DNA from: Utricularia gibba | Taxonomy: Eukaryota; Plantae; Magnoliophyta | Direction: 5' to 3' | NCBI GenBank assembly: GCA_002189035.1 | Contig: NEEC01000190.1 | Coordinates: 1 to 33,730, forward strand | Length of the DNA stretch: 33,730 nt | Part shown: in pieces, positions 12,196 to 29,083 of the stretch | Numbering within the stretch: the first letter of the stretch is position 1 | Layout: each line of letters begins with the position of its first letter | Notes under the pieces: model-generated | Told to the model about the DNA's origin: nothing | The model's database searches: none | Seen by the model: only the letters and a program-made list of their open reading frames with translations | Translations under genes and position numbers: made by a program

Positions 12196-14884
12196 TCAGG
12201 CGACAGGCTTCAAAATGTACATCTTGCAGGAATGTGGATCAAGTGTTGCTGTCAGCTTACCCACAAACCTCTGTTTCAGCGTCTCGTGCTGCCAACGCGA
12301 CAACAATCCACCAAAAGGGAGTTATCAACAGGAAGGAGATGGATTAGTGTGGGGAGCTGCTGGAGGGGGTTGGTTACCTTCCACAAGTCTCTTGCGACTA
12401 CAGAGCTCTTGACGGGGATGCCGATATCGTCCCAGTGAGCAGTGATGGTGTACGGGAGGAGAGCTCGATTCAGGAGCACAACTACCACTCTGTAGTCAGA
12501 CAGAGGCCCTGCCCAAACCTGTAAACTGGGAGTTGAGTTTCAAGGATCGTTTTGGAGGCCATGAATAACATGACTTGCCTCGAGATCGCCCTCCATTCGG
12601 ACCTTCTTAGCTTGAACCCCCAGCTTGTCTGCAACAAGAATGATTATTATGGATGAGGATGAACAGAGGAAGAGCAGGCAGCTGCTATTCAGAGAAGTGG
12701 TTTTGCTTGTACCCTGGTTAACTGCTATAACCTCCTTATTTCCAATGATTTCCACAGTGTCCTTAGTCATGTTTCGCACGTCGCAACCAATCAGCAGAGG
12801 AGCCTGGCATGAAAGATGAAAAGGATGAAACAGAGAACACAGATGCGGTGGAGTCTACTCCAGTAAACTGTACACAGACCTTGGATATTGCCCATAGGCT
12901 GAAATGGACTATGTATTCATCCTTGGACATCCCTCCGTTTCCAACCTCAAGCATGTCAGGATCTGCAATGAATCTGTGTTTAAGTAATGTGTTCCAAAAT
13001 GTTTGATTCATCTATAAGGCCAACCATTCCAGCCACCAGGCCTTGCGTAGTCTGCATAGACTTCATTCTGATCAGCTCTGGAGACCATGCTGTTGCAGGA
13101 TCATCAGATTGGAAGAAGAGAGCCGCTCATGATCAGATTCTACCAAGCAACCTCTGTATGTTTTCAAAGGTAAAAGGCACATCCATACCTGTCCCAGTTA
13201 TCAGCAATGTCATTCGTGGTTCTCCAACTGTTTCCAATGTTGGCACCCCACAGAGCAGGATGCATGTCTCCCCTGTCGTTGAACAGAAGTGAGATGCGAG
13301 AAGGGGTAAAAAATGCAGGCTGTGTAGTAAGCGAGAATCACCATTCACAGAGAGAGAAAAAGATTGGCCTCCCTGTTTTCATCAGGGCCCTTGTCATCAC
13401 GGGATATCTGCATATCCAAATGCACAGATAGACATTTGAATGAAGAACAGATCCAGGAGCTCAAATCTTTTTAATGAGTACAGAGAGTCTGGCATTGCAA
13501 ACAGAAATTCTGTACCTTATGATAGGCTTGATTTCTTTGTTGTTGCAGTTGTCATACTTCAAGTAATCTATACCCTGAAAGACAGTATCATGCAGAAGGG
13601 AAGTCAGTTCTGTGGGTGGAGATTCTTGCAATAAAATCTAGGGATGAAGTTCCGGTTTCCAAACCACAAACTGCAATACAGCAATCGATAACAGAATTTG
13701 CAACACAACGATCCTTACCCAAGATGCGAAGGTGCTTGCATCTTGTTCTTCATGTCCAAGTGAGCCAGGCATTGTCTTGCTGCAGGTGTAAGTTCTGCCA
13801 AAGGAAAAGAAAACACAGTAAGAACAGTCACTCTACCTGAGAGATTCCAATGAACAGCTGAAGTTATCTAGTTTGAAGCCTGATATCAAACACAAAGTTG
13901 AATTTAGATTACCCTGCGTCTGAATATATCCCGAGCTTAAGCCCCTTGCTATGAACATAATCAGCCAATGCCTTCATTCCAGAAGGAAAGGTAGTCTTCC
14001 TTGGGACAAGATTGCCCTGAGAGTGAATTTCCATGAATCAGGAGCTAAAACATTGGACATATATCACAGTTGTTCGATTATTCGAATGAACCAAACCTTG
14101 TCATCACGAAAAATCTCGGCCCAGCAGTCATCTGGGAACAAAGAATACCAGCATTCATGACAAGGAAATGTGGAAACAATTTCCAAACTCTAAGAACATA
14201 CCAATATTGACGTAGACATAACCGAGCTTCGAAAGCCCAGTAGAAACCAAAGCATCCGCTGACCAAAACAAAATCGTTGTGTTGGAACAAGTAATGAAAA
14301 GGATATAGCAAGGGAACTTCCCCTGTTGCGAAAGACGATTTGAATACAAGAGGCTCCAGAAGATGTCGCAAACCTGTTTCTCTGATCATCTTTTCGTCAA
14401 CGTGACACGCAAAATGATTCCAACTGTTCCACCTGAAAAGTGAAACCCCAGCAAAGGCAAAATAAGAAGAGATTATCCTTTCCTCAACGACAAGATCACA
14501 ATAACATTAAGAGAACAGAGTATGCAATGGATAAAAATGATTTCCAAAGCCAGAAAGATGAGGAACACTAGCAAAATCTGGCAGACCCCAGAAAACAGTT
14601 TCCAGAAACATCATTTTCAACAAATGGATGGATGACAAACAAAAAGTACATCGGCGTAATAAAAACCATCGCACAGTCATGATTCTGCACAACCCAGAAC
14701 ACAGTTCACCCCAAATAGAAAAAAGATAAGAAAAAGGTGCCCACCCCATTTGAGGAGTGGCCGCAAGCCCATTTGCCAACAAACTTCTTCTACTCAAAAA
14801 ATCTCCATCTTGGGAATGAACAGCAACAGCTAATGCGATCAACACAAGAAGTAGAAGCGATGAACCTCTTCGCAGATCCCCCAT
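12196..14884 (-). CDS. AGAL1: Alpha-galactosidase (GH27), AGAL1-like, many exons
   Basis: Signal peptide then [16 protein letters not shown]|W; [21 protein letters not shown]; [22 protein letters not shown]; [17 protein letters not shown]; [28 protein letters not shown]; [10 protein letters not shown]; VVARDLWK|[30 protein letters not shown]. Confidence 0.93.
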
Positions 14885-16219
14885 ACCCAACTGGTCGGAC
14901 ACACAGAAAACAAAAGAGAAGGCGACAGAAAGTAGCTCACGAGAAGCCGTAAGAATATTGAAAACAAAATTGAGAAACGTGACTGGTATATATCATCCCC
15001 AAGAGTACACACTGCACTGCGATCAGTGGTCCATTAGAAGTCATGGATGAGATCAATCAATGGTGCTGATTTGAAACAGAAGATTGATTCGATCCATAGC
15101 GTCGTATCAGGCAGGATGATTGTTGCATTTCCCATTTAAAAAATATGCTCTGCATTGACTTCTGGAAGGAATTTTGGATTAGGCCTTAGGTGTCAGCACC
15201 ACAATCATTAGGAAAGAATTTTCGGAATGTGCCCGCTTTTCATCTTCAGTCGCGCAAGGCAATCATCACTCTTCTTGGATCCACGTGAGGAGTCCCGAAG
15301 GACACGTGCTCCAGGATCAACGGAGAAGATGAAGATAAATACATATAAATGCATCAAAACAATAGCATAATTCAATAATATATTGTATGTATTTATTAAT
15401 ATGATTTAACATTATTACTCTAAATTTATATTAATTAGTAAAAAATAAAACATAATTAAAAATTATATATTTTTCTTTTCTATACCAAAAGTCTAACCCA
15501 AAGATTTGGGATATCTTATTGTATCAATCATGAGAAACGATAGATATTCTGATTTTTAAAATAATAAATTTATTTTTTAATTGATGATATTAAATATGAA
15601 TATTACATTAAATCATAAAATAAATATAGCAAGTATGAACTATAATTAAGATAACCTTAAAGTGTTGCTTGGTATATAGTTTTTATTATTTAAATATCTA
15701 TATATTAATAATAATATATATTTAATAAACTAGTTTAACAATTGCATGCATATTTTAAAAAATATAAAAATACTTAACGTTTTTGTTGAAAAATTCAAAA
15801 ATTTAATTATTTATTTTAAATATAAAATAAAATAATTTATTTATCTATTTTATTGATAAACTGACTTGATCACTTGTGCATTGTGGTGTTCTTTTTTTAA
15901 AAAAAAATTACTTTATTCATGTTTGATGTTTGTATTTTTTAATCATAAGATTTTCATGATTGTTGGAATATGTAATTTTGGCAGATTTATTGATTTTTTT
16001 CTATTTTTTATTATTTATAATTAATAAAATCATGAAGAAGTAATCTATATTTTAATGAAAACCTGATTATATTTAACACTAATGAAAACTGATTATACTA
16101 TATAATATTTTAATTATATTATATTACATGGCAACATTTACTAGTTTACAGTGATATCCGTATTTCATTACTAATCCTAATGTTTCCATATTTCAGCGGA
16201 AGTGAGGCATCTGAATCCC

Positions 16220-16227
16220 TATAAAAA
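16220..16227 (+). promoter_or_regulatory. TATA box of the PAM2-RING gene (also present in copy B at 25044-25051, minus strand)
   Basis: GGCATCTGAATCCCTATAAAAAG is conserved in both copies, about 70 bp upstream of ATG 16293, within otherwise diverged promoters. Confidence 0.6.
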
Positions 16228-16292
16228 GGGTTGTTTTCGTGAGAGTAATTCTTCAGACTACTCTAACCCCCTCTTGCCGACTTGTTTTTCCA

Positions 16293-17156
16293 ATGGATCG
16301 CCTGGCCGCTCCTTTCGTGTCTGCGCCTTTCCCGATGAATATCCATGCTCCTCCATACGTGCCACTAAGTTTGAGGGAGTTCATACTTCCACAGATTTTC
16401 GAAGCTCCTCAGGGGTTGGATCCCCTGGCCCCTCCTTCCGTGCCTGCGACTTTCCCGATGAATATCCATGCTCCTCCATACGTGCCACTAAGTTTGAGGG
16501 AGTTCATACTTCCACAGATTTTCGAAGCTCCTTACGGGTTGGATCCCCTGGCCCCTCCTGTCGTGCCTGCTCCTTTCCCGATGAATATCCATGCTCCTCC
16601 ATACGTGACATCAAGTTTCACACAGTCCGTCGTTCCACAGATTTCCGAAGCTACTTACGGGTTGAATCCCGACGCTCCACCCTTCGTGCCACGTTTCAGA
16701 GGCTTTTGGTGCTATGTGATGTTTCCTCGTAGTGAGAGTATTTCCTCCGATGAAGAACTGGAGGTTCTGGACAAACCCATCGTTGAGGGCAATGAGGTTG
16801 GTTCGAACCAGAGGAGCAGCGAGACGGAGGACGCGGCCTTCGCGGAGGAGATCGAGGAGGATGAACCTGCGCATGACGAACATCAAGAAAGGTTACTGAG
16901 GAGGTATCAGAGGATACTAATGGAGAGCATGACACTGAAGAACAATTGGGAAATTGAAGCCATTGATGAAGAGGGGCAGTCCAACATCTGCGTCGTTTGT
17001 CAGGAGGGCCTCTGCGACGACGACGGCGGCATGATCGGAATCCTGGACTGCCAACATGAGTTTCATTCCGCATGCATCAAAAAATGGCTGGAAGCTAAGG
17101 ACAAATGCCCCCTCTGTCGCGCAAGAGTCAAGGTTTCTCTGAACCGTCGTCGTTGA
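16293..17156 (+). CDS. Intronless RING-H2 E3 ubiquitin ligase (287 aa) with an N-terminal tandem PAM2-like motif array and an acidic linker; copy A, intact
   Basis: C-terminal CVVCQEGLCDDDGGMIGILDCQHEFHSACIKKWLEAKDKCPLC is a C3H2C3 RING-H2. The N-terminus has LNPDAPPFVP, MNIHAPPYVP, LDPLAPPxVP repeats. ATG 16293 is preferred over the track's GTG 16239 because that GTG is not conserved in copy B. Confidence 0.88.
   Translation: MDRLAAPFVSAPFPMNIHAPPYVPLSLREFILPQIFEAPQGLDPLAPPSVPATFPMNIHAPPYVPLSLREFILPQIFEAPYGLDPLAPPVVPAPFPMNIHAPPYVTSSFTQSVVPQISEATYGLNPDAPPFVPRFRGFWCYVMFPRSESISSDEELEVLDKPIVEGNEVGSNQRSSETEDAAFAEEIEEDEPAHDEHQERLLRRYQRILMESMTLKNNWEIEAIDEEGQSNICVVCQEGLCDDDGGMIGILDCQHEFHSACIKKWLEAKDKCPLCRARVKVSLNRRR
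16329..16697 (+). repeat. Coding tandem repeat, 3 x 123 bp (41 aa)
   Basis: Units start at 16329, 16452 and 16575, each beginning TTCCCGATGAATATCCATGCTCCTCCATACGTG. Units 1 and 2 are nearly identical; unit 3 is diverged. Confidence 0.95.
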
Positions 17157-17413
17157 TCACCTTGTTCATCTGAATGCCCTGTCAGCACCTTTGTATCTTG
17201 GATCCAGATTGCAATGAATATTAGAGAATGTTCACTTTGGCATTGCATTGAATTGTTTCCTTTTTTTATTTTTCAATCCGTTATATTTTTCTCAACGCTT
17301 CGCGGCAACCAGAAGAATCGATGGGGCCAGCTTCGGTTTCCTTTCAGTAGTATAAATTGATTTGACCGAAGGAGTAGTGAAATTAGAACAGGTGAGATAT
17401 TTATCGATCAACT

Positions 17414-17978
17414 ACGGCGGCTTTGAGCGTTTCCCCGGTCTTGACTTCTCCGCGAGACGACGCTACGCAGCTATACCGCGCGTTCAAAGGTGATGCGCAA
17501 CTCTTCTTCTTTAATTCTGCTATCAGGAGATTTTATTTCGTTGTTTGTGTTAGAAATTTGAATGCTGAAGGTCAATTGTGTTGTTCTAGGTTTCGGTTGC
17601 GATAAGGAGGCCGCTATCAACGTTCTTGCTCATCGGGATGCGGCGCAGCGGCAGCTGATCGAAAACGAGTACAGAATGATGTACTCTGAGGAGCTTTCGA
17701 ATCACCTTGCGAAAGAACTCCACGGCGATCTCGAGGTACGGTGATGGAAATGGAATCAGCGACTTTGAATGTGTTTTTTAATCTTGAATCGTTGGTTGAG
17801 TTTTTTTTTTTTTTCGTATTCAGACTTCAGAGAGCGTTTTTGATGTGTTGTCTGATCCGGCTTCGCGTGATGCGATCATTTTGAGGAAGAGTTTATCTGG
17901 TGAAATAATTAATCTAAAAACTGCTACTGAATCATATATATGCTCCCGCAGTTGTGCGCAGCTTCAACTCTTGAAGCA
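17414..17978 (+). pseudogene. Truncated annexin D5 5' fragment (exons 1-3 partial)
   Basis: Homologous to 23531-22975. The start codon is ACG instead of ATG, there is a 1-nt loss in exon 3 (ATGTGTTG vs ATGTGGTTG), and the sequence breaks off at 17978. A TATAAAT box is retained at 17351-17357. Confidence 0.9.
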
Positions 17979-17979
17979 C

Positions 17980-18320
17980 AACATACATTCCATGTGGGAA
18001 ACACAAGATACAGCCGACATGAGGTGGTGGCTATGGAGTGGCTGGTGCAAGAGGTTCTCAATTTCGAGTGCTTCTTACCAACCTCATACACCTTCTTATG
18101 GTAACATACAACTTTAGAATTCATATCGCTACAGTAAATTATAAGTGGGTACGTGCAATTGGGATTGTTCATTTTTCTAACAGGTTCTATTTAAAAGCTG
18201 CTAGAGCGAATGAATCGGTTGAAAAGACCGCCCATTACTTGGCGGTTCTTACACTTCTGGGTCAGCAGCTTCTCTGCTATTGGCCTTCAACTGTTGCTGC
18301 CGGTCTTGTTATTCTTGCCT
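17980..18320 (+). pseudogene. Internal cyclin SDS fragment (exon-intron-exon) fused out of frame to the annexin fragment
   Basis: Matches the reverse complement of 27376-27036: [27 protein letters not shown] | intron | [45 protein letters not shown]. Confidence 0.92.
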
Positions 18321-18929
18321 AAAAAGCAATAGCATTTCATCTTCCCACACCACTCAGGTAACAAATCGATCTAAGTACCCAATCCGGATTAAAGAAAAGC
18401 AACCGATTTTTCAAGAGATTATAAGTAAAACTACCGTAATTAGGGCAGTGGAGGCTTCGAAGCACAGTGATTGTGATCATTGAGGTGGGAACGTTGTACC
18501 CGATGCAATGTAAGGGGCAACCGCGTCACCGGCAGCCCACGAGACTGACCGTGCCGGTGATTAGATGGCCGCCGGCGGTGACTGGGGGATGTAGTGTACC
18601 AAAAATGACGGGTTTATCCATCACCGAGAGACTTCGAAGTAGAAGTACGCGAACTGCAGGGGGATTCAATTTTGACTTCCTGCAATTTTTTATTGGTGAA
18701 GTGTTATTTATATTTCAATAGCATTTAAATAAATGAAAAAAATCCACAAATAGACATATTTAATAAACTTAAAGGTATGAATATCATAGGCCTGATTCGT
18801 GTATCATAAATCGGGACATGAAATGAAACACAACACCACACAAGAGAAGGAAGCAGCAACAGACACTTTCTTTCGACATGAAACGAAACCACAACTTCGA
18901 CGCAGAAAACACCGAGAACAAAACGTGGA

Positions 18930-19959
18930 TCATTGCACGAGCTTGGCCATTCCGAAGGCAGCCGCAGAAGCAATCGCCCCAATGGCCGTAGTCTCCAGCG
19001 CGCTCTTGAACGGCCTGCCGCCGGTGAAGCAGCCCTTGATGTAGCCGAAGACGAGCAGCGCGACGAGCGTCAGCACGACGGAGGCGAAGACGGCATCCCC
19101 GCTTGTAGTGAAGAGCATGTAAGGGAGGAGGGGGAATATCCCCCCACAATGTAGGCTATGGCTATTGTCGCTGCACTTTGGACAGCTCTATGCGGAACTG
19201 GCTTCTCCAGTCCCAACTCAAATCTGCACAAGTCATGAACTTGAGTTGTAAATTCACAGTATCAGGGGGCTATAGATTTTGTGACAGGGGACTGAAAGCA
19301 GCATGAAAAGAAAAGGTGTTGAATACCCATTCTGCAGACAATGAGAGGTGCCCATCTCCCCCAAAATCCCCAAAATAAAAACAAGTACTCACTTCATCAT
19401 AAAATCAACCCATGCTTTTGGGTTCTTTCTGAGAGAATTCACCACTGGAGTATACTCATGAGGCTGGACGCCATAGGCGGCCAAAATTTCTGCAACCTCA
19501 GCAGCTTCTGCAACTCAACAACAACAAAAAAAACTTCATTCCACATGCATTTTAAAAATTATTTTATTGATAGGGAGACCTGTATCAGGCACTGTGATGA
19601 TCTCCTCTTCTTCCCTTTCCTGCTCTCTCATGTAGTGGTCCTCTTCGCTCTTGGCCGCAAGGTAGCTGCCCACACCGCACAATGAAGAGTGGGGAACGAG
19701 GCATCACTATCAAAAAAACCAAGTGCTGGAATGAATGTATACCCTCCGAGACCCATGGAGATGGCGCCCGCGGCGACCTCCGCCAGCCCGGCGGTGAGAA
19801 TCAGAGACGGCGAGACCTTGGCGCCGGAGAGACCGCGGCGAGGGCGAAGGGCACAGTGAGGCCATCGGAGACTCCGATGATCACATCGCGCACGACCTGG
19901 TTCGCCGTGAAGTGCTTCTCCTCATGGTGGTCGAGTAGCGAACGGTCCACTTGATCCAT
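18930..19959 (-). CDS. VIT1: Vacuolar iron transporter 1 (VIT1/CCC1 family), 4 exons, two apparent frameshifts
   Basis: MDQVDRSLLDHHEEKHFTANQVVRDVIIGVSDGLTVPFALAAG//LSGA..AEVAAGAISMGLGG|YLAAKSEEDHY..|EAAEVAEIL..|FELGLEKP..SALETTAIGAIASAAAFGMAKLVQ*. Frameshifts near 19835 and 19140. An upstream in-frame ATG at 20025 sits directly against a TATA-like sequence, so it is less likely. Confidence 0.93.
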
Positions 19960-20507
19960 TCCCCTCCGATCACGTTGCGACTTTTGGAAGGGGAAGGCTC
20001 CATGCCTCCATGGGCGGCACGCCATTATATAGACCTCCGAAATTCCTTATAAACTATTAAATTATATAATTAAATATGGATTTATTAAATTATAGTTTAA
20101 TTGAACCCAAAATATTATCCTTATTTTTTAATACAAAATTGCATAAAAATATTCCCTTACTATAAACTTAGAAAAATAATTAATCGGAACAATTACATGA
20201 AATAAACCAAAGTAAATTGAAAGTAATGAAATCATTAATTAAAAAATATTATATTATCGGTTTTATTTAAAGTTAGTTATCTTATTAAGTTTTAAGTCTG
20301 GTCAATAAAAAGATAAATCCACGTCAAGCAAGCGTTGTCATGACAACCTTTTTATTAAAAATAAATAAATAAATATTAAATGGATTGAAAAAGGCCGTGA
20401 CAAGGGATGTGTGGGTTGGGCGTCCCATAGCCTCCTGGTAAGTGCAGGAGCACGTGCTGCATTGCTTCACTCTCTCCCTAACTCACAACACACAACACAC
20501 ATCCCCT

Positions 20508-20538
20508 GGGTTCGGGTCGGGTTCGGGTTCGGGTTCGG
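20508..20538 (+). repeat. (GGGTTC)n hexamer run
   Basis: GGGTTCGGGTCGGGTTCGGGTTCGGGTTCGG. Confidence 0.8.
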
Positions 20539-20545
20539 TTGGTGG

Positions 20546-21550
20546 TGTAACGCCCTGACCAAAATCAGGCACGAATAGTGTACCGGAAGTAATTAAGTAG
20601 AATGATTATACAAATTCTATACCAAATATTTTTTCGAATAAAGAAAGAATTTTCTTGATAATTATTTTTCAATTAAGTATGTTTTATTTTTTCATAATAA
20701 ATTATTATTTAAGAAAGTGTTTACATAAATATGAAAATAACTTAAAATTATGAGGGTTGAGAGCTAAATTATATAATATCGTACAAATATTACATGAATG
20801 GTTATAGTTGATAGGATAATTGCGTGGTGGTATGTAGATGGTAGTTGTGTGAGGTTAAAATTGTCAGTTCAAAGCAGGTGAATGAATGTCAAAGTAAGTA
20901 GTTGAAAGAAAAGGATGGCGTCCTCTCGTATTCATGTGCTACGGTTAAAATAACAACAAAAACAATGATGATTATTATGGATAGGTGGTGAAGTGTGATG
21001 ATGTGTGTGTGTGTTGTTGTATTAAAATGATGATAATTTCAGAAGAACAAGTGAATGAAATGGGGGTTGGTGATGCTGTAAGGCCGACGCGACTGGTCCC
21101 ATCAGCTTAGCTTTTAACTTCATGGGAGTGTGTGCGGTGCACGACGGGCTACGTGGACGCCCCGTTGGTCGCGTCTTGCAGCCTGCCGCGTCGACAACAG
21201 AGTGCCGTCATCGGTGGAGACAACGCCCTCTTCGCCAATCAGCTGCGATCATGAAACGGGGACCCTTGGGAACAATACGACAATCCTGTTGATGAGATTG
21301 AAAATCACGGCAGAATGGGGAGTTGTGTTTGATGAAATTTGTAGGCGTGTGAATGTGGGTGGGACGCACCGCACGCCCCAGTTCGTGTGCGGTGGGGGCC
21401 GCAGATCGATATTGTTCCCTTTGTCTCCGGGAGCAAATTCTCAGTCCCTCGCATCCACCGGAAGGGACGGCGCGCAGCGCTACCGTTGGCGGGCACACGG
21501 ATTTTGGGGATTTTGGTTGTATTTTGCAACAACCACAACACCCACTATTA
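20546..21550 (+). mobile_element. Probable truncated Ty3/gypsy (Tekay/Del-like) LTR remnant; right boundary uncertain
   Basis: Begins TGTAACGCCC, a typical Tekay/Del LTR 5' terminus. An AT-rich tract follows, then a GC-rich tract with repeated GTGCGGTG/CACCGCAC motifs. No matching ...GTTACA 3' end or TSD was found. Confidence 0.45.
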
Positions 21551-22102
21551 AAATCGATCAATTTAGATTCAATTCTTTTTATAACATGTAGAATTGATAT
21601 TAATAAGTTATAAAAATAATTATCTAAAGTAAAGATTGAATCGAATTTAATCATGAATTTAAAGAAATAAATTATGTAAACAATAAAATTAAAAATGGCT
21701 CAATTAATGGAGTCCAAAAATAAATCACACTACTGGTTTTTCCTTCTATCTTAACACCAAGGATAAAAAAAAAAAGAATAAGAACGATTCTCCATAATGG
21801 ATATCTGGATTCTTGCATTTGAGATTTCTCTTGTGTTAAAACAAAAACATACAAAATATCGTTTCTATGGAAGATTTCAAACAAGGTGGTGCAATCAGCA
21901 ATACTAAATATACCATGCGAAGGATTAGTTAGACAGCGGATTTGGTCTTATATTACAAACCCAAGGCGCATCACCGAAGTAAAGAAGCAGAAAAGATGCC
22001 TGGCACGACCTATCATCATGCTCATATTGCCCAATTTTTTTCTAGGAACATGCAGAAGAGGAAGAAGCATGAACGTTAGAGGGGTCATCACCCGGGAGCC
22101 GT

Positions 22103-23531
22103 TCAGCGATACGTCGGCCCCAAAAGTGAAAGAAGGAATGCCCTGTAATGGCTGGATGTTTCTGCGTGAACTGCATCATTTAGTGGCGTGTGATACTTCT
22201 TTTGGTACTCTGCTTTTATGTACTGCATGTCGATCTCTGTTCTGGTCACTATGACTCTTGTGAGAGTGGATTCATCAGTTCCAATGCCCTTCATTGAGTG
22301 ATGCAGCAACTGTGGAATTTGCAGGAGAAATTCAGCATCATGAGGAATATATGTAAGATGTATAACACTGAAACACCCTTCAAGCAAGTGCAGAGAGGTG
22401 CAGTTCGGTCAATACCTTTGCGAAGTACTTGGCAGGATTCAGAGCACATTGCAAAATTGTCAATAGGGCGAACTCGAAGAGGCCTGATGTTTCCCTTTTA
22501 ACTGCCTGAAGGAGACGACGTGTTTAATGTGTGGTATATGAATCAATTCGTGGGAGATCGTAACGAGCCTACCTTTTTCAGAGAGCGGCCGTACATTGAG
22601 TGATAAGCAGAAGCCACGGCAGCCAAACGTCCAGGACTAGACTCGGAAAATATGTGTATGAATGTTTTCTCATCGGTTCCCAGCCTCCTTTCTCCAGCTT
22701 TGTAGAGTGACTTCGCATCGTGCTCTGCTCCTGCCCTGTCCACAATTGGACCTTCAAAGCGTACTTTACTGACGTAAGCCAGAAGCAACTGCAGCATTGG
22801 TGATGCTAGGACAATCAGTGAGTGATTATATTACGCAGCACAAGGATAACCATCAAATATGCTTTCATGTTCTGGTATCATAGCAAGACGAGAATAATGA
22901 CCTTTTTCAAATCACCGGTTATTTGACACTCAATGTCTTGTTCAAGATGAAGATGAAATCTAGTAACGTATATCTGCTTCAAGTGTTGAAGCTGCGCAGA
23001 GCTGCGGGAGCATATGACTTCAGTAGCAGTTTTTAGATTAATTATTTCACCAGATAAACTCTTCCTCAAAATGATTGCATCACGCGAGGCCGGATCAGAC
23101 AACCACATCAAAATCGCTCTCTGAATACGAAAAAAAAACTCAACCAACGATTCAAGATAAAAAAAAAAAAAACACATTCAAAGCCGCTGATTCCATTTCC
23201 ATCACCGTACCTCGAGATCGCCGTGGAGTTCTTTCGCAAGGCGATTCGAAAGCTCCTCAGAGTAAATCATTCTGTACTCGTTTTCGATCAGCTGCCGCTG
23301 CGCCGCATCCCGATGAGCAAGAATGTTGATAACGGCCTCCTTATCGCAACCGAAACCTAGAACAACACAATTGATTTTCAGCATCCAAATTTCCAACACA
23401 AACAACAAAATAAAATCTCCTGATAGCAGAATTAAAGAAGAAGAGTTCTGCGTCACCCTTGAAAGCGCGGTATAGCTGCGTAGCGTCGTCTCTAGGAGAA
23501 GTCAAGACCGGGGAACGCTCAAAGTCGCCAT
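22103..23531 (-). CDS. ANN5: Annexin D5-like, full-length, one apparent homopolymer frameshift in exon 1
   Basis: [25 protein letters not shown]|[35 protein letters not shown]|[29 protein letters not shown]|[27 protein letters not shown]..|[46 protein letters not shown]. Confidence 0.93.
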
Positions 23532-23634
23532 AGTTGATCGATAGATATCTCACCTGTTCTAATTTCACAACTCCTCTAGTCAAATCAATTTATAGTACTC
23601 AAAGGAAACCGAAGCTGGGCCCCATCGTTCTTCT

Positions 23635-23990
23635 GGTCGGACGCGTTCGTTAGGATGTGACGTGTAACGCGTACGATAAAAATATAATATCATGGTTTTG
23701 AATTTTCTTCTTTTTTTTTGGCGTACGACATACAAAGGTGCCAAACCATTTGCGAAATATATATTTTATTAAAAATAAATATGTTTATAAAATTTTCAAA
23801 AAAAAACCCCCGTTCAATTTATATTCAGTTTTGCTATCCAATTCTATTCCAAGAAAATTGGAAAAGTTAAAAATACTTTACATTTTTTAAAGCCTAAAAA
23901 AATGTGACCGAAGGAGTTGTTTTAAAAAATAAATTAGGTCGCGAAGCGTTCGTAAGAATGTGACGTGTGACGAGTACGAGAAAAATATAA
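23635..23990. repeat. Pair of about 53-bp imperfect direct repeats (23635-23687, 23937-23990) between the RING gene and the annexin promoter
   Basis: GGTCGGACGCGTTCGTTAGGATGTGACGTGTAACGCGTACGATAAAAATATAA vs GGTCGCGAAGCGTTCGTAAGAATGTGACGTGTGACGAGTACGAGAAAAATATAA. Confidence 0.85.
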
Positions 23991-24124
23991 CGGATTGAAA
24001 AATAAAAAGGAAGCAATTCAATGCGAGTGACATTCTCTAAGATTCATTGGATTCTGATCCAATACAAAGGTGCTGACAGGGCATTCAGATGAACAGAAGG
24101 ATTCAATTCAAGCAAATCAGGTGA

Positions 24125-24974
24125 TCAACGACGACGGTTCAGAGAAACCTTGACTCTTGCGCGACAGAGGGGGCATTTGTCCTTAGCTTCCAGCCATTTT
24201 TTGATGCATGCGGAATGAAACTCATGTTGGCAGTCCAGGATTCCGATCATGCCGCCGTCGTCGTCGCAGAGGCCCTCCTGACAAACGACGCAGATGTTGG
24301 ACTGCCCCTCTTCATCAATGGCTTCAATTTCCCAATTGTTCTTCAGTGTCATGCTCTCCATTAGTATCCTCTGATACCTCCTCAGTAACCTTTCTTGATG
24401 TTCGTCATGCGCAGGTTCATCCTCCTCGATCTCCTCCGCGAAGGCCGCGTCCTCCGTCTCGCTGCTCCTCTGGTTCGAACCAACTCATTGCCCTCAACGA
24501 TGGGTTTGTCCAGAACCTCCAGTTCTTCATCGGAGGAAATACTCTCACTACGAGGAAACATCACATAGCACCAAAAGCCTCTGAAACGTGGCACGAAGGG
24601 TGGAGCGTCGGATTCAACCCGTAAGTAGCTTCGGAAATCTGTGGACGACGGACTGTGTGAAACTTGATGTCACGTATGGAGGAGCATGGATATTCATCGG
24701 GAAAGAGCAGGCACGACAGGGGCCAGGGATCCAACCCGTAAGGAGCTTCGAAAATCTGGAAGTATGAACTCCCTCAAACTTAGTGGCACGTATGGAGGAG
24801 CATGGATATTCATCGGAAAGTCGCAGCACGGAAGGAGGGCCAGGGGATCCAACCCTGAGGAGCTTCGAAAATCTGTGGAAGTATGAACTCCCTCAAACTT
24901 AGTGGCACGTATGGAGGAGCATGGATATTCATCGGGAAAGGCGCAGACACGAAAGGAGCGGCCAGGCGATCCAT
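24125..24974 (-). CDS. PAM2-repeat RING-H2 E3 ligase, copy B; frame broken only by short deletions (probably consensus errors, possibly a pseudogene)
   Basis: 850 nt vs 864 nt in copy A. The 14 missing bases fall in 11 events, all shortening homopolymers or short repeats. No substitutions were found by eye. The C-terminal 78 aa are identical in the ORF track. Confidence 0.8.
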
Positions 24975-26730
24975 TGGAAAAACAAGTCGGCAAGAGGGGG
25001 GCTGTTAGTCTGTGTGAAGAATTACTTTAACGAAAACAACCTCTTTTTATAGGGATTCAGATGCCCTGAAATATGGAAACATTCTGATTTGTAATCAGAT
25101 ATAGATATTACTCTAAACTAGGAAATGTTGCCATGTAACATGATATGATTAAAATATTATATATAAATCAGTGTTAAGTAGGCTGTAGTTCTATATAAAG
25201 ATTAATTATTCATGATTTTATCAAGTATAAATAATAATAAAAAACCATAATTACATATTCCAACATTCATGAAAATCTTCTGATTAACAAATACAATCAT
25301 AAAAAATAAACAAAGGAACTTCAAAGAATATCACAACGCACAGGTGATCAACAATAAATATATCAACAAAATAGATAAATAAAATATTTATTTATATTTA
25401 AAATAAATAATTTAAAATTTGAATTTTTCAACAAAAAAGTGAGTTTTAAAATACTAAACTCAAAGTATTTATATTTATTTTGTATAATACTTATGTATTG
25501 TTAAACTAGTTTATCAAATATATATTATTATTGATATATAGATATTTAAATAATAAAATTATCAACCATACACCACTTTAAGGTTATCTTAGTTATATTT
25601 TATACTTGCTATATTTATTTTATGTTTTAATGTTATAATCATATTTAATATCATCAATTGAAAGATAAAACTTATTATTATAAAAATCAGAATATTTATC
25701 GTTTTTCATGGTTAATATAAAAAGATGTTCCAAATCTTTGGGTTTAGACTTTTTGTGTAGAAGATAAAAATATATAATTTTTAATTATGTTTAAAAATGT
25801 TTTTTATTAATTAATAGACTTTAAATTTATTAAATATGTTTATTTGTAGATTTTTTTCATTTATTTAAATGCTTGCGATATAAATGACGCTTTACCAATA
25901 AAAAATTGCAGTAAGTCAAAATTGAATCCCCTGCAGTTCGCATACTTCTACTTCCGAGTCTCTCGGTGATGGGTAAATCCATCATTTTTCGTACACTACA
26001 TCCCACAGTCACCGCCGGCGGCCATCTAATCACCGGCACAGTCAGTCTCGTCGGCTCCGGTGACACGGTTGCCCCTTCCATTCCGTCTGGTATAACGTTC
26101 CCACCTCCCTGATCACAATCGCTGTGCTTCGAAGTCTAAACTGCCCTAATTACGGTAGTTTTACTTATATTCTCTGACAGATCGGTTGCTTTTTCTTTAA
26201 TATGGATTGGTTAGTTAGATCGATTGTTACCTGCGTGGTGTGGGAAGATGAAATGCTATTGCTTTTTACGGTACTTCGGAGAGCGGGATTTGCGTATGGG
26301 ACTGCAATGTATTTCTGAAGCTTTTGGAGGTACATGTCTTCTTCAACTTGTTGCTATTACCGGATGCCCTATCCGCTGCCGTGGTTCCTCACCATGCTTT
26401 TTAGTGAAATTTTAGAGCATTCAGTTCTTCTCTGATTCGCTTGTAATTTTCAATTTCAGGAATGTTGCAAAACAACCAGCAGAGGGTAGATTAGGTAAAG
26501 AATTCAAACAAAGAAGAGTAATAACATTCCTGGTATCTAATAGCTTCCTTTTCCATATTATTATATTAGCTAAAGAATGTGCTTATGGATTGCATATCAT
26601 CTTTAAATGAATCGCCAACGGACATTTTATGATCGTTGCTTCCTACACATAAAAAGAATGGCAGATGGTGTGTACCTGGTCCCGAAACCAGTCTCATGAA
26701 TGCCGTGGAAAGATGGAAACGCACTGTCAA

Positions 26731-28882
26731 TCAGATGTACTTCACCAACCACTCCATGCTCTGTGTAACAATCTTAAGTTAAGCCATTTGGATTGTGAGC
26801 ATACCAGCAAAGAATGACGTATAAACTGGATCATTGATTACCTTTATGCAGTTAGGTAGATCATCATCTTTCTGTCTTGCATGAATCTGTATTGCCAGTT
26901 TGAAAGTTTAGAAAACATTTACGGTTTCATCTCCGAAGTTGTGCTTTCTCTTAAATTGATGTGCGAAATCACAATATTGTATGGTGCGTACCGCTGTTAC
27001 CCTGTTGCATGATGCATCTTGTTTCATGGCAATTGAGGCAAGGATAACAAGACCGGCAGCAACAGTAGAAGGCCAATAGCAGAGAAGCTGCTGACCCAGA
27101 AGTGTAAGAACCGCCAAGTAATGGGCGGTCTTTTCAACCGATTCATTCGCTCTAGCAGCTTTTAAATAGAACCTGTTACACAAATGAACAATCCCAATTG
27201 CACGTAGCCACTTATAATTTACTGTAGCGATATGAATTCTAAAGTTGTACGTTACCATAAGAAGGTGTATGAGGTTGGTAAGAAGCACTCGAAATTGAGA
27301 ACCTCTTGCACCAGCCACTCCATAGCCACCACCTCACATCGGCTGTATCTTGTGTTTCCCACATGGAATGTATGTTTCCTTACGCTGCCATTTATCACAC
27401 AAACTAACCATTCAACAGTGACATGATCCACCAAATTTGGCCAACGTAAATGCCTAGTACCAGTTGTAGGGCTGATTTTCTTCTAATCTGATTGCTAGAG
27501 TGAGGCATGCAATGGCAGCGATTTGAAGATTTCTCACACTTTTGAAGTATCCTTTGCTAAGGAATCTATCAAGTAGATTGACCCCTAAAAATATGGTCTC
27601 CTTTTGAAGCTCCTGGAGGGTAGCTTGCTGAAAGAACAAATTAAAAAAAAAAAAAAAAACTTCAGTTGGATCAGGAAACAATATGAAAAAACCTACAATC
27701 AGAAGTAGAGTTAGCTTCAGTGACCTCAACAATCCAATGAACCATGTGCAGCCGCTGTTCGACGATGAATTTACCGCATTCAAGTGCGCTGTACTTCTCT
27801 ACGTAGTTGTGAACATATCTTTTCCTCCTCTCCCGTTTCCTAATCATTCTGTATTGTTCTTCCTCCTCTACATCTTCTAGGCCCAGATCCTAGATTCCCG
27901 AATTGCAAATAATTTTCTTATGAAGAAGATCAATATCTGCTAACGAGATCAAAAACAGAGTCCTTACATCCATATGCAGAGAATCATGCTGTTCACTTTC
28001 TTGTGAAGCGAAATTAGATCTATTGAACTGCGTTTTAAACAGCATGAGCATTTCATAAGTCGGTGAAGAACTCTCTGAAGACTTTTCAGAAAACTGACTT
28101 CCAGAAGCATAACTCCAAAATGACGGCGTATAATCTGAACTATCGAAACATGATTCCGATGAAAGATTTGGTATCTTCGACGATAAGGTGCTGTTCTCAT
28201 TCTCAGCCTCATCGGCACTGTAAATTCCTTCATTGGGCAAGTTCTCAGAGCAAGCCAAATCAAGGTTGAATCCAACAATACCTTGAATTCTTGTATCTTC
28301 GCCCGTCACAGTTTCACCGATTCTGGATACCGCGTCGTTACCAAGTGAATTCTCATTTTCAGAATCCGAATCATTAAATTCCCGATATGAATCGTTCTGA
28401 ACTTCAACGATGATCCGATTTTCCGTTTCCGTTCCCGACGTGACGTCTCCGACGGAGCATGGGACACTTCAGATTTCGAAAGCTGCTCTATTGCGCATCA
28501 GATTCGCTCACATCCTCATTCTTAAGCTTCAATGAAAATTCTAGGATTGATCTAGAATGCGATTCCAGGCACGAATTCTACTAGCGACGATTGATCGCGC
28601 ACCCGGTTCTCGTAGCACTTTATCCTGGAGTAAGATCGCGTAATGAGTCGAGGACACCGATCATCTCTTCGGCGATACACTCGATACGCAGGATACTTCG
28701 CTTACTTCCGTAGCATGCGAATTGATGCCAGCATTTCGAACGATGGGCGCAATGCGAAACTGCCTCCGGCGACGGACGGATCGGAGGCGTTTCGTGGTGA
28801 AACTCAGAAATTGATTTGATTTGACTCTTCTTTGTTTCACAGTAGTCGTAGTCGCAGTCTCTGTGAGGAGCTTGCGTTTCAT
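26731..28882 (-). CDS. SDS: Cyclin SDS (SOLO DANCERS), meiotic cyclin; apparent frameshifts in exon 1
   Basis: N-terminus [30 protein letters not shown]; LITRSYSR; [37 protein letters not shown]; cyclin box [49 protein letters not shown]; C-terminus [15 protein letters not shown]|SMEWLVKYI*. An alternative upstream in-frame ATG lies at 28942. Confidence 0.92.
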
Positions 28883-29083
28883 CGGTAAACGAGAGACTGG
28901 TATAAGATTTTCAGGTGCAGGAGACTTTCGCGAGGTGCGCATGTTTGAAACTGGAAGTACTTTGTATGGAACGGTTCAGAAACTGCGTGAAAGTTATTTA
29001 TACCAACCTGCTCGTGGGCCCCACATACACTCTCTACAGTTATTATTGATGGTTCCATATATATTTTTACATTGAAATATATG

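Follow-up and report, generated by a model that had tools for sequence, protein, structure and literature searches.

A rotated, inverted duplication of a PAM2-RING gene region in Utricularia gibba, with a circular DNA intermediate as a candidate route

Circle-mediated duplications and the Utricularia locus

Duplications that pass through a DNA circle have an accepted signature in human and cattle: the order of the blocks is rotated, microhomology is present at the fusion point, there is one opening point only, and the copy does not lie in tandem (PMC7188851; PMC7450558). Here we describe a duplication of this layout in Utricularia gibba, in a stretch of 33,730 nucleotides (contig NEEC01000190.1 of assembly GCA_002189035.1, forward strand; hereafter the window, meaning the whole stretch analysed). 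It contains twice a gene for a RING-H2 protein with a PAM2 match: once in a donor segment, B, together with parts of an SDS-like cyclin gene and of an annexin gene, and once in a rotated and inverted copy of this segment, A. The cases described in PMC7188851 resemble copy A in their rotated syntenic order (abcdefghij becoming efghijabcd), which appears as two parallel lines in a dot plot, in the position of the copy away from its donor, in a divergence of a few percent between the copies, and in that the circle is deduced from topology alone. Segmental duplication pairs of the type A-B/C-D to B-A/D-C (Chicote et al., 2020; PMC7450558) and the KIT translocations by circular intermediates that underlie colour-sidedness in cattle (Durkin et al., 2012, as described in PMC7450558 and PMC12235870) share with copy A the flipped block order, a fusion point where microhomology amounts to 0–2 nt or 1 nt is inserted, minor losses at the site of opening, the lack of breakpoint homology and the non-tandem copy. 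Documented footprints of DNA circles that re-entered a germline genome come from cattle, human and yeast; in plants there seem to be hardly any. A limited literature search, which is no proof of novelty, found no plant example of a circle-mediated permuted duplication, and a 2026 review of plant extrachromosomal circular DNA (eccDNA) never uses the words reintegration and permutation.

The locus also departs from these systems. The duplicated units of PMC7188851 measure 20–130 kb, whereas the unit in this plant has 4.4 kb and its copy lies inverted at only 4.2 kb from the donor. Unlike in those cases, the direction from donor to recipient is clear from truncated exons in A, and while none of them created a new copy of a coding gene, here a whole gene was duplicated along with its upstream region. 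The cases of PMC7450558 and KIT are distant or inter-chromosomal, which excludes local inversions, whereas the proximity and inverted orientation of A and B leave a path of serial rearrangements open. Finally, the breakpoints fall in exons and in an A+T-rich spacer and not, as in PMC7450558 and the KIT cases, in interspersed repeats. Copy A is a well-resolved case of an already known kind of event, unusual for being found in a plant, for being small and for comprising a whole gene with its upstream region. As a candidate it is clean and resolved to the base: donor and copy share one window, the direction is unambiguous, all junctions could be read, and the duplicated gene is complete and has upstream sequence.

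Structure, direction and junctions of copy A

When the window was compared with itself by blastn and a repeat search, with copy A (plus strand) anchored against donor B (minus strand), four inverted A/B blocks with E-values of 1e-166 to 0 were obtained (Table 1). Beyond these blocks, the self-comparison returned only the 123-nt internal repeats of the RING gene. Read along the minus strand, B runs from 27376 to 22975, and A consists of 25816 to 22975 followed by 27376 to 25819. The 4,402 nt of the donor are thus represented in A as one full turn, each part once and in rotated order, which gives two parallel diagonals (B-A/D-C). The rotated inverted duplication is real: the initial annotation of this DNA had described A as an inverted circular permutation, and the blastn blocks, which cover 22975-27376 once, bear this out. 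The same holds for the joining of the outer donor ends in A at 17978/17980, where the junction text TTGAAGCA-C-AACATACATTCC is read at 17971-17991. The two ends are fused head to tail (17978-C-17980) with a microhomology of 0–2 nt, and the C at 17979 was either inserted as filler or arose by a later substitution.

The outer ends of A had been said to be adjacent in the donor, and they are, at 25816 and 25819. What did not hold is the left coordinate of A (15421) and the sharing of TAAATTTA/TAAACTTA at its ends, as secure homology begins at 15429. The opening point sits in a spacer of 78–85% A+T between the cyclin 3' end and the RING gene, and TAAATTTA at this point is its own reverse complement. 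The terminal TAAATTTA overlap, claimed to span 8 nt, is not above chance in sequence of 85% A+T (anchored extension versus shuffles, P about 0.93). Because this match is no better than in shuffled sequence, the secure result is a loss of 2 donor nt (25817-25818), and an 8-nt duplication combined with a 5-nt deletion is a conceivable alternative.

Segment B served as the donor from which A was derived, because both ends of B lie inside exons of genes that continue intact, whereas A holds only truncated pieces of these genes. The boundary at 22975 falls at about residue 67 of its open reading frame (ORF), within the stretch of residues 33-95 that is matched by positions 2-64 of the 66-position Annexin profile; in B the annexin gene runs on past this boundary with repeats 3 and 4, and in A its 5' part is cut within the exon for repeat 2. 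The boundary at 27376 lies 7-8 nt inside a cyclin exon (27253-27382), and the cyclin part of A begins at this same distance within the exon. The exon is preceded by a GT..AG intron, is colinear with positions 12942-12813 of an orthologous locus (L005), and has a Cyclin_N exon just upstream. The truncated annexin and cyclin pieces of A gave no Pfam match and are fused out of frame. The direction proposed in the initial annotation is therefore supported by the contrast between truncated exons in A and complete genes in B. If A were the ancestral copy, B would have needed an exact rebuilding of two exons, and we reject this possibility. An RNA-mediated origin of A was likewise rejected, with introns, promoters and intergenic DNA all kept. 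The closest relative of the cyclin in a library of 1.8 billion proteins is a cyclin of 579 aa, with the match at the C-terminal end. In length and in the layout of its exons, the cyclin agrees with SDS of Arabidopsis. A 90-aa open frame (17845-18117, plus strand) leads from the annexin repeat-2 fragment across 17979 into the cyclin fragment; it is out of frame there and has no Pfam match. Of the words sampled from 17162-18774, only about 0.2 occur in RNA runs, a share that may stem from A or from B.

Logan contigs of four runs (X1, X2, X4 and X5) were placed on 15000-19400, and those that bridge a junction have >31 nt on each side of it. The left junction (15428/15429), which has the weakest support, is crossed without mismatch by an X2 contig of 1,404 nt (15036-16439) and by this run only, contigs of X4 and X5 ending at 15426 and 15412, respectively. 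At 17979, an X4 contig of 1,531 nt extends 172 nt to the left and 340 nt to the right; an X2 contig of 196 nt with only 19 nt on the right was not counted. The right junction (18774/18775) is contained in an X1 contig of 706 nt (18703-19400, 0 mismatches) and in an X5 contig of 139 nt (18681-18818, 5 differences). X1 and X2 are essentially identical to the window and may represent the assembled genotype; X4 and X5 differ from it by about 3–4% and are other genotypes or haplotypes. The test for misassembly set by the initial annotation was passed, with contigs from four runs crossing all three junctions, and an assembly artefact is ruled out by those crossing 15429 (X2), 17979 (X4) and 18774 (X1, X5).

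A further joint is present in X1, X4 and X5, whose contigs leave the RING end at 17165 and continue with 30 or more letters that equal window positions 13614-13643. This match comprises 28/30 positions, is antisense to an exon of the alpha-galactosidase gene, and has a TGT microhomology at the joint. The 17165/13614 joint connects a 3.55-kb unit (13614-17165) head to tail; the unit may be repeated in tandem at a sister locus, form another permuted copy elsewhere, or exist as a circle.

Table 1. Features of the duplicated region and its surroundings (positions in the window; A, copy; B, donor).
Feature	Position	Strand	Description and basis
Copy A	15429-18774	+	Inverted rotation of donor B
Donor B, 4,402 nt	22975..27376	-	On the minus strand: cyclin 3' part, spacer, RING, intergenic, annexin 5' part
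Copy A, arm 1	15429..17978	+	RING upstream spacer, RING gene, intergenic, annexin 5' part; reverse complement of B 25816-22975 (blastn, MAFFT)
Copy A, arm 2	17980..18774	+	SDS-like cyclin 3' part and downstream spacer ("X"); reverse complement of B 27376-27033 and 26268-25819
A/B block	A 15429-17293 = B 25816-23978	inverted	87.4% over 1,925 columns (blastn)
A/B block	A 17308-17978 = B 23637-22975	inverted	91.0% (blastn)
A/B block	A 17980-18323 = B 27376-27033	inverted	97.4% (blastn)
A/B block	A 18320-18774 = B 26268-25819	inverted	89.9% (blastn)
Closing junction	17979..17979	+	Single C between annexin-side end (..GAAGCA) and cyclin-side end (AACATAC..) (three-way alignment)
Opening point in donor	25816..25819	-	A left end = 25816, A right end = 25819; 25817-25818 (2 nt) absent from A
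RING-H2 gene of copy A	16293..17156	+	287 aa from ATG, 305 aa from upstream GTG; zf-RING_2 6.9e-11, PAM2 9.1e-5; 864 nt of own duplicated upstream sequence
RING-H2 gene, B copy	about 24975-24125	-	PAM2 match and 123-nt repeats; zf-RING_2, PAM2
Conversion tract, A side, 895 nt	16267..17161	+	From 26 nt before ATG to 5 nt after stop; no real substitutions
Conversion tract, B side	24119..25000	-	About 10 gaps of 1-4 bases, mostly single bases lost from short one-letter runs
768 nt in B, absent from A at 18319/18320	26269..27036	-	1-4 nt microhomology; holds last cyclin exons
326 nt (299 + 27) in B, absent from A at 17293-17305	23640..23977	-	Flanked in B by 54-nt direct repeats (23635-23687, 23937-23990)
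Acceptor left flank	14903..15428	-	526 nt upstream of alpha-galactosidase start codon
Acceptor right flank	18775..18932	-	VIT1 3' flank; stop codon 18930-18932, 156 nt from A
Alpha-galactosidase	start codon 14902	-	Melibiase_2 Pfam match, ORF
VIT1	about 19957 to 18930	-	VIT1 match, frame reading
Annexin, complete, four repeats	22103..23583	-	Pfam Annexin on four exon ORFs; boundary 22975 inside repeat 2
SDS-like cyclin, complete	26727..28942	-	Pfam Cyclin_N and Cyclin_C, frame analysis, colinear with L005 and L006

Routes to the rotated order

The simplest explanation of copy A by a single event is a circular DNA intermediate, to which we assign a probability of about 0.5. According to this model, a 4,402-nt stretch of the ancestral array of SDS-like cyclin, RING and annexin genes would have closed into a circle by end joining of its ends in the cyclin exon (27376) and the annexin exon (22975), with at most 2 nt of microhomology. 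A sister chromatid or a replication product could have been the direct source of the circle; alternatively, a tandem duplication may have existed briefly and released it by pop-out recombination, which would explain why the donor is intact. It would then have been opened once, in the A+T-rich spacer upstream of the RING gene (25816/25819), with a loss of about 2 nt. A break at a distance of 4.2 kb, flanked by the alpha-galactosidase promoter and by the VIT1 3' end, would have received it by ligation or copying, with its orientation inverted. This would have left a second RING gene, equipped with 864 nt of upstream sequence of its own, and behind it a dead fusion of annexin 5' and cyclin 3' parts. 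Afterwards, the copies would have diverged by ~10%, A would have lost 768 nt and 326 nt, and gene conversion would have homogenized the RING coding tract and probably a part of the cyclin fragment.

A circle would account in one step for the fact that the copied parts sum to one exact turn. If two segments had instead been copied without a circle, the ends of A would have coincided at 25816/25819 with odds of roughly 20 in several thousand, by our own estimate. Among the features by which a duplication is assigned to eccDNA, rotated order, head-to-tail end fusion, a single opening point and a distinction between donor and recipient are present. The eccDNA interpretation of the initial annotation thus stands with respect to topology, direction of the event, place of insertion and reality of the junctions, which are directly supported; the circle itself and its way of forming we infer, since other paths give the same product.

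Several observations weigh against a circle. No circle has been seen, and with A and B close together and inverted, serial rearrangements or template switching can give an identical product. Non-circular paths are not excluded by the junctions, as a tandem duplication, an inversion and a flip yield all three of them, and the identical inverted tract of 895 nt shows that A and B have recombined, as such a serial path needs. The divergence of the blocks is uneven (0.024 to 0.164); we attribute this to conversion and composition, but a more complex history could also be reflected. Only X2 crosses the left junction; this run matches the window exactly and could come from the sample that was assembled. 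Lastly, neither an empty site nor an intermediate arrangement was recovered from protein, contig and metagenome collections, which hold no close relative.

Among the alternatives, a serial rearrangement without a circle has to be considered first. To describe it, S denotes the cyclin 3' part with the spacer, P the RING upstream region, R the RING gene, N the annexin 5' part and M the block between A and B with VIT1, a prime marking reversed segments. Firstly, a tandem duplication of 22975-27376 would create the joint of annexin 5' and cyclin 3' parts in place (cyclin5'-S-P-R-N/S-P-R-N-annexin3'-M'-aGal'). Secondly, an inversion from the S/P point of the second unit (25816/25819) to the M'/aGal' boundary, between the VIT1 3' end and the alpha-galactosidase promoter, would produce inverted P-R-N repeats. 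Thirdly, one recombination between these inverted, RING-containing repeats would flip the intervening segment and yield the present order base for base. Derived symbolically from the block order, this path gives the same three novel junctions with no need for a coincidence, as both outer ends of A fall automatically on one spacer breakpoint. The closeness of A and B and their inverted orientation make it possible; the substitution-free inverted tract of 895 nt shows recent A/B recombination, and the 17165/13614 joint in X1, X4 and X5 suggests tandem-type duplications on the kilobase scale around the locus. We nevertheless consider it an unlikely history and rate it below the circle because not one compound event but three separate ones would have had to arise, and each of them to spread through the lineage. 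No intermediate state is present in the window or in the four runs, and small non-homologous inversions are much rarer than tandem duplications. As a caution for genome scans, a rotated order alone is no proof of a circle where donor and copy are close and inverted, because tandem duplication, inversion and a repeat-mediated flip give the same sequence.

Template switching in a single replicative event without a closed circle, as in the switching of templates at stalled forks (FoSTeS) or break-induced replication mediated by microhomology (MMBIR), appears to us similarly doubtful. The initial annotation had named it as the alternative; it still is one, but not the only one, the serial path having been missed. 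A broken or stalled 3' end in the intergenic region between alpha-galactosidase and VIT1 would prime on the opposite strand at B 25816, copy to 22975, switch to 27376, copy to 25819 and return. Known FoSTeS/MMBIR rearrangements resemble copy A in the inverted copy within a few kb, in microhomology or a filler base at the junctions and in the unchanged donor. The distance of only 4.2 kb from the template is in the typical range, the junctions have 0–3 nt of microhomology and a possible 1-nt filler, and the donor was left intact; Chicote et al. (PMC7450558) also invoke a replicative interaction at the insertion step. What FoSTeS/MMBIR does not predict is exactly one turn of the donor with exit and entry no more than 2 nt apart. 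The two would be aligned if the A+T-rich spacer held a break or fork barrier, but without a special lesion at 25817/25818 their match within 2 nt is an unexplained coincidence. Moreover, for synthesis primed by microhomology, copied stretches of 2.8 kb and 1.6 kb are long, and the junction sequences cannot distinguish such synthesis from end joining.

A two-ended repair of the acceptor break is a far weaker candidate. Both break ends would have primed at the same palindromic A+T-rich donor site, copied outward and then joined, the joint being 17979. The palindromic TAAATTTA at the opening point would suit this route, and plants are known to copy filler DNA into breaks. However, the TAAATTTA match is at chance level, two independent microhomology primings within 3 nt would be needed, each with kilobase-long synthesis, and we know of no described precedent for two-ended break synthesis of such size.

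An assembly chimera or a transposon capture of the Pack-MULE or Helitron kind is largely refuted: the assembly does contain homopolymer deletions, and Pack-MULEs and Helitrons also move fragments of neighbouring genes and form chimeric dead-end reading frames, but the junctions are crossed by contigs of four runs that include at least two other genotypes, a difference of about 10% between the copies is not what an assembly duplicate would show, and A has no terminal repeats, target duplication or Helitron ends and carries as cargo one contiguous rotated stretch that includes introns and promoters. Terminal inverted repeats at the ends of A or of the donor (P = 0.19-0.79 versus shuffles) and a target-site duplication at A (P = 0.36-0.67 versus shuffles) were at chance level, Helitron-type ends (5'-TC...CTRR-3' with a hairpin) were not found when the termini of A were read directly, and an Rfam search of the window gave no matches.

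A broader proposal starts again from the circular intermediate. The PAM2-RING gene might have spread by repeated passage through small DNA circles, B having given rise to A, and the 17165/13614 joint marking a further permuted copy that originated from the A locus and lies elsewhere. We regard this as quite improbable. If true, plants would have in the spread of this gene an equivalent of the translocations described in cattle, where circular intermediates act in series, and a complete gene could multiply together with its promoter by this route.

Later history of the copies and the acceptor site

The RING tract (A 16267-17161, B 25000-24119) has sharp limits and 3 apparent mismatches in 881 aligned nt, all of them beside gaps, against p = 0.07-0.15 in the flanks, and its k-mer depth is about 2x that of the flanks in X1 and X4. 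It is best read as the result of ectopic gene conversion between the inverted copies. A stretch of 100 identical nt within the dead cyclin fragment (18178-18277 in A, 27178-27079 in B) is probably a second conversion tract. Within the RING gene, three tandem repeats of 123 nt (A 16294-16670, B 24610-24973) encode repeated PAM2-like motifs, one of which is matched by Pfam PAM2 (9.1e-5). In X5 the depth is 3–6x that of the flanks, and loose contig ends at 17162 and 16799 agree with further RING copies.

According to the initial annotation the RING gene was left intact. The frame is indeed open in A, whereas in the assembled donor it is interrupted by the gaps in the B tract. Across A 16796, contigs of X1, X2 and X4 show the undeleted form only. 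A comparable defect affects VIT1, whose conserved exons are frameshifted in the assembly: X1, X4 and X5 all insert a C after 19139 at full depth, which mends one frameshift, and a second is located at about 19830, between the FALAA and GLSGA motifs. The frameshifts of the donor RING gene are probably homopolymer errors of the assembly. Since the gaps look like such errors and the reads carry only the undeleted form, both RING copies are probably open and identical. Unpolished homopolymer errors can thus give one member of an identical gene pair the look of a pseudogene, and read support is needed for such calls in this assembly.

The discontinuity at 18320, which had been taken for a junction of the duplication event, is instead a later deletion of 768 nt in A. 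Exons of the orthologue at L005 match 26830-26897 and 26727-26770, in the region of this stretch. The X4 contig that crosses 17979 has about 770 extra unplaced nt exactly at 18320 and then continues with A-specific sequence without mismatch. For this reason A was most likely complete at first, and the deletion arose later and is polymorphic; a chimeric origin of the contig is a residual possibility. The absence of 326 nt at 17293-17305 is most likely a repeat-mediated deletion in A. In the cyclin fragment of A, an X5 contig skips 163 nt (18086-18250) whose ends read CT..AC, like an intron of the opposite strand; a deletion allele would account for this, as would antisense splicing, provided that the run contains RNA.

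Jukes-Cantor divergence between A and B was calculated per block and is highest in the RING upstream spacer (0.164), followed by the downstream spacer (0.115), the RING 3' flank (0.106), the annexin part (0.074), the cyclin fragment (0.024) and the RING tract (0.003). Non-coding sequence thus ranges from 0.07 to 0.16; the copies are roughly 10% apart, and A is old. Plant DNA accumulates about 7e-9 substitutions per site per year, a rate that may differ in this lineage. At this rate, a divergence of 0.10-0.16 corresponds to several million years.

Copy A is flanked by an unrelated promoter and an unrelated 3' end, which mark the insertion site. The gene map thereby confirms its predicted place between the alpha-galactosidase promoter and the VIT1 3' end. 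Searches among homologous proteins with the full RING protein and with its C-terminal half found no close relative of this locus, and exact-product look-ups for five ORFs of the window found neither a close relative nor another accession. Two metagenome scans, one with the RING protein and one with a 29-nt junction sequence, likewise gave no close relative. The best match to the protein of the last VIT1 exon (74%) is from Genlisea aurea and too distant to reveal an empty site; in the Genlisea locus and at other VIT1 loci the neighbour is a heat-shock-factor gene and not alpha-galactosidase. The nearest orthologues of the SDS-like cyclin (L005 and L006) are about 75% identical and not syntenic, having no RING, annexin or VIT1 gene within 10 kb. 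A small structural polymorphism lies beside the acceptor site: in X1, X4 and X5, 54 nt of the alpha-galactosidase promoter (15124-15177) are replaced by 22 other letters.

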